DNA from: Bugula neritina
Taxonomy: Eukaryota > Animalia > Bryozoa
Reading direction: 5' to 3'
Assembly: GCA_964035545.1 (NCBI GenBank)
Contig: OZ037773.1
Location: 3,067,751-3,131,750, forward strand
DNA length: 64,000 bases
A program made the translations under genes and the position numbers. The notes beneath the pieces are model-generated. The model was not told the DNA's origin and made no database searches. It was given only the letters and a program-made list of their open reading frames with translations. How positions within the stretch are numbered: the first letter of the stretch is position 1; each line of letters opens with the position of its first letter. Shown here piece after piece: positions 4,871 through 18,505 of this stretch.

Positions 4871-7828
4871 GCAATCTTGCATTCTTGTCAAATACTTCCA
4901 CTAAATTATTTTTACTAATTTTACACATTGATATGTGTAATAATAGTGATGGGTCAAATATGACTATAGTTGTAGAATTTCTTTCACTTTTTAAATAACA
5001 CTCAACAGGTGGACAGTGTATATAGTACATACATATTAGTTAGATACTGAACACTGGGCTAAATATAGGGTTTAGTTATTAAGTAAATATTGATAGTTGG
5101 TGCAATAATGGAGAAATTAAGTTATGTACATGTTCTTGTGATTACATTTTTATTAACCGCACCCCACGCTAAAATTTGTTATCCAGATGAAGAAGGTTAA
5201 GCTATCAAAGCTTTTAAATTACTGCACAGAAGTGTAAAAATAGCAGCCTATTTCTTCTTGTTATATAGTGAAATGACATTCATTATGTATATAGGCATAT
5301 ATATATATATTTTAATTCTGTTACATCATATTTTAGCTTTAAAACAAGCATGTTATGTCCATTTGTTTATCACACCCCTGCAGTAAATATGTCAAAAATT
5401 CCTTACTTTTGCTACCTAAAATTTCTTTTAAAATATAAGCAGCTACATAGAGCATTTTTTCAAGTTAGAAAATATGTATATATATTTTTCAACTACGTTT
5501 TAAAAGGAATACAAATATGTAAACCACAAAGCAGTGATTGTCTTCTTTCAATGCCATATTTTTGATGACACCAAGAAAGAAGGTGATAATGCAACTCCTA
5601 AGAGCATGTGCACTAAATCGCTCCTCTGTCTGAGAGTATACCATTTGTATTAATGTATGAAGTCTTCAACATATATTTCAACTTATTTTTGCAAGTAACT
5701 CATGACAGTAAACTATATGCTTGCTTTTCTTCATGTGTGTGTGCGTGTGTGAGTGTGTGTGTAAAAATGCAGCACTCATAATAGTTGCTATTTTATGAAC
5801 AGCTTACTATAGCTACAGTTATATGTAATTGCATAGGAGTGTTGCAAGTGTTTGCTAAAAGATGGTATATAAAACATGTCGACGAATTTGTTGTAGAAAA
5901 ATTTAAATAATTACTTAGCATTTAGCAATAAAATTGTTCATGTACAAATCAGAAACACCAAGTTGTATGCATATATTTCAAATAGTATATGCATGAATTT
6001 GCAAAAAAAATTAGAACTTATACTTTCACTATGAGTATATGTTTTATATATGTGCTCATTTTGTATATACTGCACAATATGTTATTTACAATGTTAAACC
6101 AAAATAATCAGAACTCAATATAGTGTAATACAGGCACATCTACAATGTTAACAAATATAACATTAAAAACAAGAAACAAAATTGTTGGTATCTTTTACTT
6201 AATTTTTTACAAGCAAAAAATTATTCTTGCCGCAAACTAAATTTAAATGCTGAGGTTCGTAAAGTTATATGTTTGTTAAATTATTTTGCATTTGTTTATA
6301 TTCTACAAATAATTTCTACATCTTTTATATAATTGCGATATTTCTTTTCGTCTACTACATGCAGCTCATTATATGCATATGTAGGCTATATACAATGCAG
6401 CATAAAATTTTATAATACTAAGCAAAAAATGCTATGAAAATAAAAACATTTTACAAAATGATATTATATTATGGTAGCAATAAAGTTGTAATAGACTATT
6501 ATTTAATGAGAAGACAATTATGTCTTTATAATGAAGATTGATAAATTTATAATATGAGCTGAAATTGAGTGAGAAGACAATTATGCTTTCAAAATACTTA
6601 CAAGACTAAATTCTTATCTAATAGCTACAGTATTTAATATCCTTTGTTCAGAACAAAGTCTAAAAGGAGCGGATTTAAATAAAAATTCAGACCTGCATTT
6701 GTTAAAACTTTTCAATCAAAATTATTACATTATATTATTCTTTCTCATAACTCCTAGCTTCTAAAACCTTTTGCATGAAAAAATTGATTTAGAATGCAAA
6801 TTACTGCTAGAAATTGCCGTGTTTTAATGTCAACCCTAACTGTATCCACCACTTGTTTTAGTTGTTACGATCGTTGCCTAACCAATGAAGTTGAACTGGT
6901 TGTACCTCCAGCCAATCAATTACTTATTTCAATTGCGCCTCATTAGGCTAGGATCGTTGACGAAATCTATATAATGTAATACAAATCCCATTACCACTGA
7001 TTGACCCGAAGTTCTCTACGACTTTTATAGTGGTATAGGATAATAGATATACTGCACTTACATTATAATATTATGCAGCCTCAATTAGATTCATTGAACA
7101 TGATTGCTATCTCTATAATATGCATACATGTAGACATGTGTAGACGATTCTAAATAAATATAAATACAAGATTTATGTAAAACTATATATAAGAGATTTA
7201 TTCACTCTAAATTGTGGTATATTTTATTGTATGTATCACTATACTTTTACTGACATGTAAATATAGATATCTGAATAAAATATAATCATTCATCAGCTGC
7301 ATGTATTCATATTACACTGCCCAGCTCTCAGCTGACACTTTAATGAAAACAAGATTATTATAATAATATATATAACAATAATAATATATATAACAATATA
7401 TATTATTATAATAATATATATAACAATATATATTAGAACATAATTTTAAGGTGCCTGAAAATGTAGTTTTATTTGCCATAATTGATGAAATATTTAATAG
7501 ATCACAAATTTGCATGTTTTAATTTGCTATATACATTAACAAACTTTGCTCTATATTGGTTATGATTACAAGATTTAGCCAAAATCTTATAATAATACAC
7601 ATTTTACTTTTATATGATGACAGTTTACCAGTATAACTTAAAATTCTAGCTTATAGCTTAATTTACCCATGCAACTGCGTTTTGTAAATATAATTTTATC
7701 AATGTAATTTTGCTTTTAATGGCTCTAAGAATGTATATATGCATCAGCTTAATACAATAACCATGAACCTATATATGATTGAATATTTCAAACTGACAAT
7801 ATAATTGTATATGTTATCTTGTAGTGAG

Positions 7829-10800
7829 ATGAGAAACTGCCACTGCAGCGTTTTGTATAATCTGTCCTGTTTAGCTATCTACACTGCAGGTAGAAATTGT
7901 CCCATACCCAGTCTATAAAATATTATTCAGCTATAATATTATGCACACATGATTATATAGGACTGTTTACAGAACACAGTAGCATATAAGAATTTTTGCA
8001 GCTTACATGTATGTTTTTATGTGGTTTTAGCACAGCCATCTACAGAGATAGACTACAGTACTACAACTTCACCAGATTTCTATAAAGATGAGAAGATAAC
8101 TTTCACATATGAAGCATCTGGTTATAATAATCTGAGATCCTTACAGTTACGATATGAAGCTGATGGAGACAGCACAATCTACAGAAGTGGGTGTAGTAGA
8201 AGTTCTAAGGATGACACAGTATGGGTGAGCTTTTCAACTCCAGATATTATTACTCTCTCTGGAATAGAAGGACCTGGAGTCAGTGATGCATACTGTAACT
8301 CAGTTGGTAAACCTGAAGGTTTCACTCTTTCTGTACAACTCACTGTAACAGATTCAACACTCAATCGGAGGTTTCACTGTAGAGGGTTTGAAGGAGGAGG
8401 TGTGGGGGAAATTTTCTCCTCAGAAGTTTCAGTAGAAGTTAAAAGTAAGTTTGTAAAATAAACTTCATTTTTTTCTTAGAATATTAGTTGCCAACGTTTC
8501 TTTTATAACCCCTGTATGCGTGCAACTACTACCCTGCAACGTATACACAGATTATGTATCACATATATTCATTGATGTAATATTTATTGTCATTATACTA
8601 CTTGTTATACCTCCACTCAAATAATAAGATTCCAAATGAGAATAAAGTAACAACAATGAGCATTGCTGCAGTTTCTGTATATATGCAGCAACAATATCTG
8701 TATAAATTGAGTTTGTCATATTTCTTCCACTGGACATCTTCGTAAACAATTTGGATATATATTTATAACCTACTTATAGACATTTCATATAAACAATCAG
8801 CATAAATGAAATTACTGTATGTTCTTCACCGCATTCAACATGCAACGTGACTTCTAATTGGTTTTTGTTTTCAACAGCCGCTCCAATTGATATATTTCTA
8901 AATGTACAAGAAAAGATCACGGAAGGAACAGTGTTTAATTTTGATTGTATCTCTGCGGGGGCAGTTCCTGTGTCAAACTATGAATACGGTGAGTATTTTT
9001 TGAAATAGTTCCACAATTAATTCAGAAATAGCGTAGGAATAAAAGTAGAATATATATCACATCACTGAACCCCACCTGATATAATCAGAAATAAATTTTA
9101 AAGTGATTGAGACATATAGATTTTAAAATATTCGGGTTTTTTAAAAGCCAACACTATTGGGGTTCTTTCACAGAGTCTGACTATAACTATACATTAGTAA
9201 AACAGTTTCCATAAGATCTTTTGCTATATATACTGTGCTTGCATATACGGTAGGTATATAGCATAAATTAATGTCAACGGTGCAATAGTATAATAAGAAA
9301 TATTTACGTCTCAGAAGTAAATGGTAACACAGTGGCTGGAAAGTATACTCCTACTGAGACAGACAGAACTGGACTAACTTTATCTTGTACAGATACAGAA
9401 CATTCTAACTGGAAGAGAGGAAACACTAATAAAACTGTTACTATCATGCCACAGTGTGAGTATCATAAAAAAATTATATAATTATGCCACAGGTATATGC
9501 ATTATAGAATTAAAGCTTATATAAATTACCATACTTGGTGACATTATAACAAGCTCGCTTACAATAAATTTCATTGCTGCAGATTTAACCGTAAAACATG
9601 GTACAGATACTATAATCATAAAAGAGTTTAACCCAGGACAGTCTGATGTGAAATTAGAGTGTAGTCAACATGTGGATGCTAACCCACCACTCTCTACCTT
9701 TACTTGGACATATAATGGAGTTGTGACTACAGAAACATTTAATAAGCTGACTTTGACTTCTCAAGCAGATGGTGTATTAGAAACAGTTTCATGTACAGCT
9801 GAGAATGGTCTATGTAAGAAATTATTTAAAGAATTATCACCATTTACTGATTTGTTCAGATACAAAACTTTAGATAATTTTCACATAAATGATCCCATTA
9901 AATCTTTTGAGAAACATGCATATTGCAAAGTGATCAATACTATTAACAATCTGTATTAATTGATAATTTTCTGCCAATCAATTAATGCAGATTGTTAGTA
10001 ATATATTGATAACTTTGCAATATGTTTCTCAAAAACTTTAATGAAAGTATTTATGTGAAAATTATCCAAGCTCATTCAGAGAAGACGTGCAGATATTTTG
10101 GCCAAACTGATTTAAGCAAATTGTTGTTTATTCCTTACAAGAAAAGCATGTGTGAGAGAGATACAGAAATATTAAACAAGCAAAAGTATTTTAAATTATA
10201 GATTATTAAAGAGTGATTACTACCAATTTTGCTCATGACTTATAGGGACTGCTTTTTGCCTTCTGACAGTTTACAACGATAGGGATCTAATCTAAATTAA
10301 AAAGTGGTTGTATATATAATATGGGTTCAAAGCTTTATATAATCCTCAGAAAAAGTCTCATATTGAGAAAAGTCTTAACCGTGCATCCTTGCAGCAGCTA
10401 ATTATAGAACAAATGTATTCTGTAATTTGAATAGGAGATTATCCCCTCATTCACACTTACCGTATCGTACGCCGTAACAGCAAAAATAAAATGGCGAAGC
10501 TGTTGCATTTTGTCAACGGGTGTTCACACATTGCCGTAAAAGTACAACGCATGACGTTGAGCTGTGATCAATCATAATAAAGCCAATTCTTGTCTGCGGT
10601 GATTTGAACGCCTTTGAATATTATTTACAAATTATTCGCAACATTCTTATCAAAAGATGTTATATAAATGCTATTTACTAAATAAAAGCAATTACATGAA
10701 AAGAATCTTTTTTTTAAATATATTCGTTTTTAAAATAATTGTGCAAACTAATTTAAATAATGAATATTTAAGCCGTCCAAATCATTTTTAAGTTTTTGGT

Positions 10801-12171
10801 TTGCTTGATTTTGTGATTAGGGAAAGCTAGATTTTTAAGCTGGGTTTAATTCAAACAAGCCGGATAAAGATTTTTTAATCTTTTAAAACTTTTGAATTGG
10901 TTAAATTAAATCAAAAATAAGTGATTAAAATAAACTAGCGAAATAGTTCTTTAAATTTTAGTACCAGATCAACTCTACCCAATAGGAGCCCGCCGTGATT
11001 TTTTGAATCAAGCACTGCTTGATCAACGCCGCAACGTATACCGGAGTACGATTTAGCCCGGATGTTAACAAAATCGCTAAAATTTGCTGTTACGGCGTAC
11101 GGTACGGTAAGTGTGAATGAGGGGTATACTAGCAAGAAAGCTGTAACATGACAGACATAGATCAGTGTAATAGTAACTTATAGTACATATAAATAACTTT
11201 GTTGTGGTAACAATTTTATTATTTTTTTTGCAGCTGAAGTTGTTACTGTTTTGTGGGCTATAAAATGGAGTTGTTCTATCACACTGCCAAACACGTTGTC
11301 CACCAAAACTCTTTCTAAAACACCACCATGTGTAGACATAGACAAAGCTGCTCTGGGAGGAGCACTTGCTGGTTGTTGTCTGTTACTTATCATCACAGCT
11401 GGAGTGGCATTTTATTTTGGAAAGCTGAAAGGTAATATATAATTGAAATGTGTAATGGCACAGTAGCTTTGACTAAAAATATGTTACACTTCCACGTTTG
11501 ATATTTAGTTTGACTGCTGGGTGAATTATAACCAAACCTCAGAAATAGAGAATAATTACTAACTATCTATTCAAAGAAATTAGTTTTGATAAAAAGTTTA
11601 AAAACAATTTTATGATTAAAAAAAGGGAGTAGAAGGAACATCTAAGATCCGTCGGAAACAATATTATCTTTTTGTCATTAGCTTTATTTATTTTTACATA
11701 TATACAGGAATCAGGACAGGTAACTCCCCATACACAGAAATATCTGTCACTAGGACTGATAATGCCCAAATAACAGAAAGGTCTGTCACTAGGACTGATA
11801 ATTCCTCATACACGGAGATATCTATTACTAAGACTGATAACTCCCCATACACAGAAATGTTTTTCACTCGGACTGATAATTCCCCATACACTGATATGCC
11901 TGTCACTAGAATAGATGATCACAACTATGACTCACCAGATGTATCTCAGAGATACCAAGTCAGTCATTCTCCAGATAATGAGTCAAAGAGTATTACCAGG
12001 AAAGATGATTCATCATATGTAGAAATGTCTGTCACTAAGAAACATGTTGACAAGTATGACTCAGTTGATATTTCTCAACCACAAGCAGTCAGTCAGTCTA
12101 GAACTAACTTTGTAGATTCAGATGGCCATGTGGGACCTGCTCAGAATATGTATGCTAACATTGGACTTTAA
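7829..12171 (+). CDS. Gene A: 3-Ig-domain type-I transmembrane receptor with tandem cytoplasmic tyrosine motifs (~539 aa, 7 coding exons)
   Basis: Exons 7829-7889 (signal peptide MRNCHCSVLYNLSCLAIYTA), 8031-8444 (V-like D1), 8878-8988 + 9315-9455 (D2), 9583-9813 (D3, C..DANPP..FTW..C.AENG), 11234-11431 (D3 G-strand, stalk, TM ALGGALAGCCLLLIITAGVAFYF), 11708-12171 (tail ending MYANIGL*). All introns GT-AG and phase 1. Spliced length 1620 nt with no internal stop; exon sizes match paralogs B and C. Confidence 0.88.
10443..11124. mobile_element. 682-bp PIF/Harbinger-like MITE in gene A intron
   Basis: ~42-bp TIR CCCCTCATTCACACTTACCGTA.CGTACGCCGTAACAGCAAA with TAT 3-bp TSD on both sides. Confidence 0.88.
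11713..12078 (+). repeat. 39-bp coding minisatellite (13-aa unit RTDNSPYTE[I/M]SVT) in gene A tail
   Basis: Units start at 11713, 11752, 11791, 11830, 11869, with a YDS variant at 11908; a second diverged pair (SSYVEM, KYDSV) starts at 11998. Confidence 0.92.
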
Positions 12172-12559
12172 ATTCTTTGTTGAGTATTTTGGGCTTAGAA
12201 AAGAATTGAAAGCTTTTTATGCTAACTCTTATAGTGTACCAAAAATACTTGAACATAATATCATTTATTCAGAGCTTTTAGGCATTTTTGTGAACTTTGA
12301 AAACTTTATCTTAGTTGGAAAGTAAAATAAGCTGGAAACAGCGTTTGATATTTTAAAAAAAAAGTTGTTTCAATTTCTACCACAGTCACATTTCTAATAA
12401 AGAATTATAAAATTGCTTTTGAGATATTATTTTGCTATAGAATGTAGAAAGTAGGCAAGTAAAGCAAAAAGGCACATTTTGTTTATGAATGGGCACGTGC
12501 AGTGCTCGATTCTTATATTTTTCAAACAACAATTGATGTATGCAGTGTTGAGTTTATTG

Positions 12560-16295: not shown

Positions 16296-18505
16296 ATTGT
16301 ATCGTGAGATTTTTAAAAAACAGCGATAAAAAAGTGCTCAAATTATTACGTGTATAATAATGAGCAATTATATTATTGAGGAAAAGAGCAATTTAATTAT
16401 ATAGATGTTGTTTTATTGTACTACTAATAGTTTCATGCCTCTTCGGCACTCCTCAGGCACAATATTGACAAATTTAAATTTTTACATTAAGAAAATCAAA
16501 ATGCTAAACACAAGGTAAAACGTAACGAAAACATAGCAGTGGCTGTATTGTTATATAGGTTTGTAGGTGTAAATTAATATATAAAAACCATAATGTAATG
16601 TACAAACATAATTTATAGCAGATGCATGAAGTTTTTGTTGGGTGACTATTCTCTATGGGTATTTGTATATTATTTACTATAGTACTTATAATATAAATAG
16701 GCTACAGAGTTTCTAGGTTTTGTGGTTGCACAGTAAGAATTTTTTTGAGTGTCGGCAGGTTGATAAGAGTTCGTTTCGCTTGTTTAAAGTACACATGTTA
16801 GGTTTGTATAAAATAAAGAAACATTCCCATAGGCATAAATTACACCTTTTGGTAGTTGTGTTGTATGGTTTCGCTTTTCTTAATATTTTCCAGCTTATGT
16901 TGTGCTTAATGTTTTTGTTAGTTAGTTGCCAAATGTGTTTGCTAAGTTCTGTTTGATTTGCTTTCTCCTTGTTTTTAAATGATGATCTGTGGTTTGCGTA
17001 TCTTAGTTTGAACGGTCCTTCACTTAGGCCAATGTATGTTGCAGGCTCGTTTTCGGTAGTTTCCACAGTTGCTTGGTATATAACTCTGCTCTCCTGGCAG
17101 CTTCCTTTCAGCGGACAACTTTCTTTTTTTCTACAGTTGCAGTTTTTTCTAGGGGTTTTGTTTTGTTGCTTCTGTTTCTCTAATAGTCTGTTATTGTGGG
17201 CATTTATGGTCTGTTTTATGTTTGGCATGCAGCTGTAGCTAACCTTTATAGTGTTTTTGTTGATTATTTTATAGAGTGGGTGTTGTTTTGGAAATTCCTC
17301 ATTCATGATTTTAAAGAAGATTTTTGCAATTCTTGTGGTTACATGTTGGCTGTATGGTGGATTGTACCAAACAACTTTTCTTTTTCGGTTTCGAGATTTC
17401 TGTTGTGTGTTGTTTGCAAACAATTTGTATGTTCACATATAAATTCATTGGTATACAATTATTAACGTCCAAATTAATATATTTACCTTCTGTAGACTTG
17501 GCCAGAAAACCTGGTGTTCAAGATCCAATTGTGAAAAAGTTCAACCCTCTACAACCTGATGCTAAACTAGACTGTAGCCAACATGTGGATGCTAACCCAC
17601 CACTCTCAACCTTCACTTGGACATATAATGGCGTTGTGACAACAGAAACATCTAATGAGCTGACTCTGGATTCTCAAAAGAATGGTGTGACAGAAACAGC
17701 TGAATGTGTAGCTGAAAATGGTTTATGTAAGAAATTGTTTAAATTGTACCACTGATGATAATTTATGCATGCCGTTACTTTAAGCTTAAAAAAATTATTG
17801 ACACTAATTATGCAATACATTTTATTAGATGGTAAACTTACTTATAGTACTAAATATGATGCTCAGAAATAATACAACATTTTAAAATAGTTATTATGTT
17901 ATATTGACATTTCCCTTTTATTCTGTTCTTATTATGCAGCCAAATCGGTTACTATTACATGGACAATAAAGTGGGATAGTTCTATCACACTACCAAGCAC
18001 AATCCCAACCACGACTCCTTCTGAAAAACCACCATGTGCGAGCATAAACAAAACTGCTCTGGGAGGAGGATTAGCTGGTGGTTTTCTGTTACTCATCATC
18101 ACAGCTGGAGTAGCATTTCATCTTGGAAAACTAAAAGGTATTGAGTTGATGAAATTCAAATATAAAATAATAATTTCATTACAAAAATTTACCAAGCTGC
18201 ATTCCAAAAAGGTAATTGCAAAATAAAACCGACTTGCCTTGCTTCATTAAGGAATTGGGTCACAAGGTGTAACAAGGACTGATAACTCTCCATACCCAGA
18301 GATTTCTGTCAATAGGACTGATAACTTCCCATACACAGAGATGTCTGTCACTAGAACTGATAACTCCCCATATACGGAGGTGTCTGCCACTAGAATGGAT
18401 GATCACAACTATGACTCACTTGATATTATATTTGATAGACAAGCAGTTAATACAGATAACCATGAGGCACCCTCTGGGCAAACTTATGTAAACATCAGAA
18501 GCTAG
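14365..18505 (+). CDS. Gene B: 2-Ig-domain paralog (D1+D3, D2 lost) with TM and tyrosine-motif tail (~384 aa, 5 coding exons)
   Basis: Exons 14365-14422 (MTHFYYFLYFVVYLSIHSA), 14880-15293, 17496-17726, 17940-18137, 18252-18505 (ends TYVNIRS*). GT-AG phase-1 introns, 1155 nt open frame, AATAAA at 18573-18578. D1 is ~81% identical to gene A D1 (26 of 138 differences by hand). Confidence 0.82.
14610..14830. repeat. (ATATA)n microsatellite in gene B intron
   Basis: Direct pentamer array. Confidence 0.95.
15980..16060 (+). pseudogene. Relic of first D2 exon in gene B
   Basis: Acceptor ataacag followed by VAAYPRLLSKNITKGKSIMILC then a stop. ATCACGAAAGGAAAAAG resembles gene A ATCACGGAAGGAACAG (KITEG); position matches exon 3 of A and C. 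Confidence 0.5.
16192..16291. repeat. (TA)n microsatellite at the PLE 3' end
   Basis: Direct dinucleotide array. Confidence 0.95.
16292..17425 (-). mobile_element. 5'-truncated Penelope-like retroelement (RT C-terminus/linker + GIY-YIG endonuclease) in gene B intron
   Basis: ORF 16713-17423 has WYNPPYS, KVSYSCMPN, CNCR..CPL.G.C, VIYQA..TYIG (GIY-YIG), FKLRYANH and CNLCL.E, all typical of PLE proteins. The 3' region carries a hammerhead and abuts a (TA)n tract. Confidence 0.9.
16414..16464 (-). ncRNA. Minimal type I hammerhead ribozyme of the Penelope-like element
   Basis: Minus strand reads UAUUGUGC-CUGAGGA-GUGCC-gaaga-GGCAU-GAAA-C-uauua-G-UA-GUACAAUA: 8-bp stem I, CUGANGA box, 5-bp stem II, GAAA, 1-bp stem III and GUA cleavage triplet. 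Confidence 0.85.
18275..18430 (+). repeat. 39-bp coding minisatellite in gene B tail (3 units + YDSL variant)
   Basis: Units start at 18275, 18314, 18353, 18392 and encode SPYPEI, FPYTEM, SPYTEV, HNYDSL. Confidence 0.92.

Follow-up and report, generated by a model that had tools for sequence, protein, structure and literature searches.

A 39-bp coding minisatellite in the predicted tyrosine-rich cytoplasmic tails of a clustered immunoglobulin-type receptor family in the bryozoan Bugula neritina

The window considered here, a stretch of 64,000 nt from chromosome 9 (C9) of a Bugula neritina genome assembly (216 Mb), carries a gene, referred to below as gene A, whose last exon encodes a predicted cytoplasmic tail containing tandem 13-residue units centered on a tyrosine; a sister, gene B, and a third related gene, whose tail lies just beyond the window end, occur in the same stretch. 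Coordinates are positions in the window unless a chromosome or contig is named. As modeled from the sequence, gene A comprises seven plus-strand exons (Table 1) whose joined coding sequence of 540 codons has no internal stop, with introns that are all AG/GT and all phase 1 (12 of 12 splice ends canonical). Exon 1 was placed by a conserved block 5' of the V exon, common to the window's third gene, and by its in-frame joining. Only one strong hydrophobic segment is present (residues 359-381, then GKLK; hydropathy maximum of 2.28 over the 19-residue window at 363-381), its helix is free of charged residues, and the terminal exon, for which the first-pass annotation had already given the exact ends, begins 277 bp further 3' and is joined to it through a phase-1 codon (AAA G and GA ATC, giving GGA). 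Gene A is accordingly modeled as a type-I membrane receptor, with a predicted leader, a V-set-like domain, two more immunoglobulin (Ig)-like domains, a stalk, one helix, and a 158-residue tail. An AT-rich simple repeat is present at 7374-7413, 5' of the gene.

The frame that runs through the tail exon from 11710 meets no stop before the terminal TAA; it opens with IRTGNSPYTEISVTR TDNAQITERSVTR TDNSSYTEISITK TDNSPYTEMFFTR TDNSPYTDMPVTR and continues as IDDHNYDSP...RYQV...RKDDSSYVEMSVTK KHVDKYDSV...NMYANIGL. Divided into 13-residue units, its first part reads TGNSPYTEISVTR / TDNAQITERSVTR / TDNSSYTEISITK / TDNSPYTEMFFTR / TDNSPYTDMPVTR, after which come IDDHNYDSPDVSQRYQVSHSPDNESKSITR, KDDSSYVEMSVTK, and KHVDKYDSVDISQ...NMYANIGL. 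In the output of Tandem Repeats Finder, positions 11727-11909 have a period of 39 bp (4.7 copies, 75% matches, score 197), and a 78-bp double-unit row is listed as well; a 20-nt unit core has seven matches in the window and none in 100 shuffles; and a 26-nt core has 35 matches in the genome, all of them within eight tail exons at C9:3.079-3.229 Mb, with none for the reversed-pattern control. The 13-residue, 39-bp repeat proposed in the first-pass annotation is thereby confirmed, and the nine tyrosines and the single Tyr-less unit (NAQITER) that it listed are exactly those of the translation. A displaced sixth unit is matched by the repeat-family search at 11997-12040 (75% identical to the reference unit), 129 nt past the fifth. 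With head-to-tail, in-frame units inside the 10-100 bp range of coding minisatellites, at a 39-bp period and in 4.7-5 copies in gene A and up to eight in its sisters, the array is a coding minisatellite that specifies the module consensus T-D-N-S-P-Y-T-[E/D]-(M/L/I)-S-V-T-R.

Table 1. Positions of the features of gene A and of the sister gene B in the 64,000-nt window
Feature	Position	Strand	Description
Gene A exon 1	7829..7889	+	Start codon and short leader resembling a signal peptide (MRNCHCSVLYNLSCLAIYTA); donor GT, phase 1
Gene A exon 2	8031..8444	+	V-set-like Ig domain, Pfam-silent; Tyr at near-invariant Cys27
Gene A exon 3	8878..8988	+	Putative first half of second Ig-like domain (2a); open frame, AG/GT, phase 1
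Gene A exon 4	9315..9455	+	Putative second half of second Ig-like domain (2b)
Gene A exon 5	9583..9813	+	Third Ig-like domain; phase-1 ends
Gene A exon 6	11234..11431	+	Stalk, transmembrane helix ALGGALAGCCLLLIITAGVAFYF, and GKLK stop-transfer; ends AAA G/gt
Gene A exon 7	11708..12171	+	Terminal coding exon, predicted cytoplasmic tail; acceptor AG 11706-11707 (cag/GA), stop TAA 12169-12171
Five tandem 39-bp units (exon 7)	11716..11910 (starts 11716, 11755, 11794, 11833, 11872)	+	SPYTEI, NAQITER (Tyr lost), SSYTEI, SPYTEM, SPYTDM
First terminal-type module (exon 7)	11911..12000	+	IDDHNYDSPDVSQRYQVSHSPDNESKSITR; aligns with the sister HNYDSL module and with 12040-12090 of the gene A tail exon
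Displaced sixth unit (exon 7)	12001..12039	+	KDDSSYVEMSVTK; sixth copy in repeat-family search
Second terminal-type module (exon 7)	12040..12168	+	KYDSV, C-terminal NMYANIGL; YxN at 12151-12159
AATAAA hexamer	12396..12401	+	Polyadenylation-signal-like, about 225 nt past the stop; read from sequence, role inferred
Gene B stalk/transmembrane exon	17940..18137	+	Sister gene; 198 nt, length equal to that of gene A
Gene B tail exon	18252..18505	+	Three 39-bp units (YPEI, YTEM, YTEV), then HNYDSL and YVNI

Two other origins for the repeat were rejected. The minus-strand frame through it is open as well, and codon periodicity cannot separate sense from antisense because the third codon positions of both frames coincide; the antisense reading was nevertheless discarded, since in every case the tail shares orientation and phase with the transmembrane and Ig exons and closes with a conserved stop. 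A dispersed-satellite origin was discarded because the genome has the unit nowhere but in the eight tail exons, and a metagenome contig scan for the 39-bp unit returned no match. As a separate observation, a 36-bp satellite on chromosome 3 (positions 987-1688 of L016, C3:11259819-11262998; 19.4 copies, 94% matches, open in two frames) has a core of about 22 nt of its consensus (GATAACTC..CATACAC.GA) in common with the 39-bp tail unit, by kinship or by coincidence.

A six-frame search of the genome places the tail exon type in eight clustered genes and in one fragment on chromosome 4. All eight tails have an open frame and a conserved C-terminus, and repeat number, the variation of which among paralogs had been suggested for typing, is five in gene A, three in gene B, two in the third gene, and 4, 8, 4, 7, and 7 in five minus-strand genes, or 2, 3, 4, 4, 5, 7, 7, and 8 when ranked. 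The placement of the repeat on the cytoplasmic side, also claimed in the first-pass annotation, holds up well: the phase-1 join to a transmembrane exon is alike in all eight genes, with that exon 115-390 bp upstream on the same strand (ten related stalk/transmembrane exons exist in the genome, eight of which are paired with a repeat tail), and two independent Bugula gene models share the junction GKLK-G-IRSQ. These are KAF6038701.1, a 146-aa hypothetical protein and the one real relative recovered by a tail search of 1.84 billion representative proteins, and EB796_020209 (196 aa), recovered by a word-based protein search; both are models of the 2020 Bugula neritina draft assembly (PMC7576161), both have four units and the gene A transition ...HLGKLK-G-IRSQA..., and KAF6038701.1 has one unit with His in place of Tyr. 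A second match of the tail search, bacterial P0002, was judged a chance repeat-to-repeat match, having its own 'LKTDNGKLSEQLV' repeat. In local BLAST, identity between the genes of the second assembly and any sister gene reaches only 75-85%.

Two side observations concern the surroundings of these genes. The chromosome 4 fragment (L003, C4:16602450-16602635) is an isolated distal half of a gene-A-type tail (KDDSSYVEMSVTKKH...MYANIELKILC) with no units upstream, and the draft contig VXIV02000374.1 carries, adjoining a receptor gene, a dispersed repeat of about 1.1 kb (L019:8727-9830), of which at least 40 copies at 85-95% identity are spread over all chromosomes of the present assembly.

The ectodomain is of a kind that domain databases miss. 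The V-like exon matches no Pfam family even at E<=1, the second Ig-like domain gave no Pfam match when searched with exon 3, and the third has a weak Ig_3 match (E=0.0031) below the Pfam cut-off. When the V-like exon was modeled with AlphaFold2 from an alignment of 23 sister exons (A1), the mean predicted local distance difference test score (pLDDT) was 88.7, and the best 50 Foldseek matches in the PDB were nearly all antibody or nanobody V domains, together with CD8-alpha and one T-cell receptor chain (probability 1.0, query-normalized template modeling score 0.35-0.59). The N-terminal domain is thus predicted to fold as an Ig V domain, and both the predicted structure and the anatomy of the gene support describing the repeat as the cytoplasmic tail of an Ig-type receptor. 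Cys27 of this domain is kept in 22 of the 23 aligned exons; in gene A it is Tyr (FTC to FTY), so the late Cys (YC) lacks its usual partner. At least 72 V-like exons of the Pfam-silent type are present in the genome, mostly on C9 (about 0.03-4.2 Mb) and additionally on C1 and C4, and only about ten are linked to the stalk/transmembrane exon type of gene A. A dense block of partly broken V-like copies lies at C9:3157879-3161756, about 26 kb past the window end. A profile search with the V-like exon returned JGI metagenome fragments only, and the literature search found no paper on this Bugula receptor family.

The units themselves are unevenly conserved across their 13 positions. Among the 40 units of the eight genes of this assembly, the first four positions are T (35), D (38), N (40), and S (38), followed by P (29), Y (39), T or I (27 and 9), and E or D (24 and 13); the ninth position, Y+3, is M, L, I, or V (25, 10, 3, and 1) and hence hydrophobic in 39, and the last four are S (35), V or A (25 and 9), T (33), and R or K (34 and 6, basic in all 40). 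The expectation that tyrosine would be better kept than the other repeat positions is borne out in part: at 39 of 40, Tyr is among the best-kept positions and exceeds Asp and Ser (38 of 40), yet it equals hydrophobic Y+3 and is surpassed by Asn at Y-3 and the basic last residue, both invariant. At the nucleotide level, the Asn codon has undergone ten synonymous AAC/AAT changes and no replacement, and the Tyr codon three TAC/TAT changes and one loss; minor bases are about twice as frequent at third codon positions (93) as at first and second (39 and 52). Over those parts of the tails that can be aligned, the ratio of nonsynonymous to synonymous differences (pN/pS) is 1.46 in one of ten pairs and 0.21-0.57 in the other nine, the latter values being similar to or below that of the V exon (0.42-0.63 for gene A; median of 0.59 for its relatives). 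The tails are under moderate purifying selection, and what is conserved across the 40 units is the whole module D-N-S-x-Y-x-[DE]-hydrophobic rather than the tyrosine alone. In the Tyr-less unit of gene A, unit 2, S-2, P-1, and Y+3 are changed as well, making it the most divergent unit (eight differences from its nearest neighbor); further decay of this kind is expected of a module whose purpose lies in its tyrosine.

An order is also discernible along the arrays. In a nearest-neighbor analysis of the 39-nt units, unit 1 (SPYTEL), unit 2 (N-DNSLYTEL, which three genes have in identical form), and the last units (…MSTTR, …MRATR) correspond by position between genes, whereas the interior SPY[T/I][D/E]M units vary in number and are 1-3 nt apart in the 8-unit gene (L005). 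In both assemblies, Y+3 is occupied by L or I in the two units nearest the membrane and by M in those that follow, so the free toggling of the Y+3 codon by single-base changes that had been proposed gives way to a position-dependent choice whose order is kept across sisters. The codons in question are ATA, AGG, ATA, ATG, and ATG in units 1-5 of gene A, ATT, ATG, and GTG in gene B, and, over the family, ATG 25, TTG 6, TTA 4, ATA 2, ATT 1, GTG 1, and AGG 1. The general layout is two YxxL/I units, each fitting the consensus of the immunoreceptor tyrosine-based inhibition motif (ITIM), then YxxM units in varying number, the constant HNYDSL, and a C-terminal YVNI; a YxN site ends every tail, as YANI in gene A.

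The motif strings fit the consensus patterns quoted for them in the first-pass annotation, apart from the assignment of NYDSP as Nck-type, the string being YxxP, which is Crk/Abl-type. Comparison of ten full-length tails (the eight of this assembly and the two of the 2020 draft) finds two sites of the ITIM consensus [S/I/V/L]xYxx[I/V/L] in eight of them, represented by SPYTEI and SSYTEI in gene A, although a match to so loose a pattern is weak evidence. The consensus of the immunoreceptor tyrosine-based activation motif (ITAM), YxxL/I-x(6-12)-YxxL/I as applied by Huene et al. (PMC9546547), occurs exactly once in seven of the ten tails (five sisters and the two draft-assembly tails), in modules 1-2 with a 9-residue spacer. 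This YxxL-x9-YxxL pair results from the adjacency of YxxL units at a period of 13 residues; it is missing from genes A and B and from the window's third gene, in the case of gene A because unit 2 lost its Tyr. The invariant NxxY can in addition be read as a PTB-type motif, a reading that, like the ITAM-spaced pair, was absent from the first-pass annotation.

Taken together, these features suggest that the tail is probably a repeat-built array of tyrosine docking modules, varying in number among sister receptors and read through SH2/PTB binding. Slippage or unequal exchange would add and remove units in register, a process that fits the spread of two to eight copies and the near-identity of some neighboring units (1-3 nt apart). 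After ligand binding, Src-type kinases would phosphorylate the tail tyrosines, and the phosphorylated modules would dock SH2 or PTB proteins of SHP2-like, Syk-like, p85-like, and Grb2-like kinds, assignments that rest on known SH2 selectivity. The membrane-proximal units would be of the ITIM/ITAM type, the YxxM units, variable in number, of the PI3K type, and the terminal YxN of the Grb2 type, so that signal valency and type would depend on how many modules a tail has and on the identity of Y+3; gene A, lacking the unit 2 Tyr, would keep only single ITIM-type, YxxM, and YxN sites. Candidate readers are encoded in the genome, including co-linear SH2-SH2-tyrosine-phosphatase exons (SHP2/corkscrew-like; C3:23740128-23748502, plus strand), co-linear SH2-SH2-tyrosine-kinase exons (Syk/Shark-like; C7:14371513-14377601, plus strand), and several further SH2-kinase genes; such genes are expected of any bilaterian and show only that docking is possible. 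Apart from these, many small unplaced contigs (e.g., C10:262-966, C33:18549-19265, C176:33222-33977, and C201:57526-58122) match kinase or phosphatase domains over the full domain length, in frames that include several TAA and TAG but no TGA, a pattern that looks like a ciliate-type genetic code and hence like a cobiont among the unplaced contigs of the Bugula assembly.

Several points weigh against this proposal. The consensus patterns of the motifs are loose, and because the units are copies of each other, their motifs cannot be counted as independent. That the module is conserved as a whole could be due to a different constraint, or to repeats that are young and subject to gene conversion. 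The copy-number differences shown are differences between sister genes, not between individuals. A search of sequencing runs for the stretch gave no RNA run; a single DNA run contained 70% of its words, and nine small runs contained 4%. Lastly, gene A may be losing function, because its V-domain Cys27 is Tyr and one of its units has decayed.

Among the other explanations, the one that survives best, although we regard it as rather unlikely, is that the modules are phosphorylation-independent sorting or uptake signals, with YxxΦ (Φ, a hydrophobic residue) bound by AP-2 mu2 and NxxY by PTB adaptors of the Dab2/Numb/Ced-6 type, such that more modules would bring faster internalization, as in scavenger or engulfment receptors. 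Every intact unit fits both NxxY and YxxΦ, as the invariant Asn and the nearly invariant hydrophobic Y+3 (39 of 40) would lead one to expect, and CED-1/Draper/LRP-type receptors likewise combine NPxY with YxxL; the canonical PTB motif NPxY is, however, not present in the module, whose N-S-P-Y has Pro at -1 instead of -2 and agrees with the relaxed NxxY only. Moreover, SH2 selectivity classes account better than a generic YxxΦ for the L/I-then-M order, the acidic Y+2, and the C-terminal YVNI. Sorting and SH2 docking are compatible with each other.

It is less likely that gene A is a decaying or silent copy and that only its sisters function. The replacement of an otherwise near-universal Cys27, the loss of the module 2 Tyr through three substitutions, the unusual FF and P residues of modules 4 and 5, and the lack of a matching RNA run in the search described above all point in that direction; against them stand the open 540-codon frame with its full set of canonical splice ends and a V exon pN/pS that is the same as among relatives. 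Least likely of all is that the repeat is a neutral low-complexity spacer, its likeness due to recent duplication and gene conversion and its motifs accidents of one founder unit: although all units derive from one unit, some are 0-3 nt apart between genes, adjacent units are no more alike than units of different genes (7.25 vs. 7.52 differences, compatible with cross-gene exchange), and one pair reaches a pN/pS of 1.46, the remaining nine pairs lie below 0.6, the Asn and Tyr codons vary synonymously with almost no replacements, all ten arrays are open with a common conserved C-terminus, and both assemblies show the same position-specific order of L and M.

The array of docking modules preferred here has partial counterparts elsewhere. 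In the vertebrate leukocyte receptors KIR, LILR, PIR-B, SIRP-alpha, and CD3-zeta, motif number differs among sister genes, and the three ITAMs of CD3-zeta arose by internal duplication; such receptors likewise join an Ig ectodomain and an uncharged transmembrane helix to several ITIM/ITAM-type motifs, but these lie in unique sequence or separate exons rather than in a short tandem array, and homology is not detectable. Tandem tyrosine modules made by recombination, the number and type of which alter SH2 binding, are found in Helicobacter CagA (EPIYA), Chlamydia Tarp, and Bartonella Bep; these are injected bacterial proteins, as opposed to the animal's own receptor in Bugula, and the likeness is one of principle only. 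The tails of Draper, CED-1, and MEGF10 pair an N-x-x-Y type PTB site with ITAM-like YxxL/I sites, but differ in having an EGF-repeat ectodomain, a canonical NPxY, and no tandem array. What appears to be new in Bugula, as far as the gene sequences indicate, is that a familiar kind of signaling tail is varied by a short in-frame tandem repeat.

Among colonial invertebrates, the closest parallel is the Alr family of the Hydractinia allorecognition complex (ARC), in which single-pass receptors form a large cluster on one chromosome (Huene et al., 2022; PMC9546547). In that family, too, Ig-like domains escape sequence models yet fold as V-set, mostly with one exon per domain, tails bear ITAMs (some overlapping) or ITIMs, and Syk/Shark-like and SHP-like genes are present in the genome (PMC9546547). 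Hydractinia nevertheless belongs to another phylum, and its Alr tails are described as too diverse to align, the words 'tandem repeat' being absent from the text of PMC9546547, whereas the Bugula tail is one 39-bp minisatellite common to a subfamily. A draft-genome paper noted 'weak similarities' of some Bugula sequences to Hydractinia Alr1 (Rayko et al.; PMC7576161); no cnidarian protein was among the matches of the tail search and of two word-based searches limited by length, whose relatives were confined to Bugula and JGI proteins, the Alr sequences not having been compared directly. The fester co-receptors (FcoR) of Botryllus are also clustered type-I receptors of the Ig superfamily, with tails carrying one to four ITIM, hemITAM, or other tyrosine core motifs per gene, and their authors propose signal tuning through motif changes (PMC12582321). 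There, motifs are swapped by allelic substitution and alternative splicing; in Bugula, the corresponding changes would be gain and loss of the 39-bp unit and point changes at Y+3.

In the bryozoan literature, a search for a molecularly described recognition or immune receptor system found genome papers only. A more speculative and improbable extension would make the Pfam-silent V-like cluster of C9 a bryozoan self/non-self recognition complex, serving colony fusion or immunity and convergent with the Hydractinia ARC and Botryllus fuhc, in which the tail array would be length-polymorphic between individuals and module number or Tyr loss would shift output among activating, inhibitory, and PI3K-type signals. 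If true, this would amount to a germline 'valency dial', undescribed for any animal immunoreceptor.

In summary, the locus provides a concrete candidate receptor family for bryozoans, with an ectodomain that domain databases overlook. Its natural sisters form a graded series of two to eight modules, accompanied by natural Tyr-loss variants, so that the effect of the number and spacing of tyrosine motifs on receptor output can be tested with natural sequences. After cnidarians and tunicates, bryozoans would represent a third independent lineage of clustered atypical Ig receptors with ITIM/ITAM-type tails.

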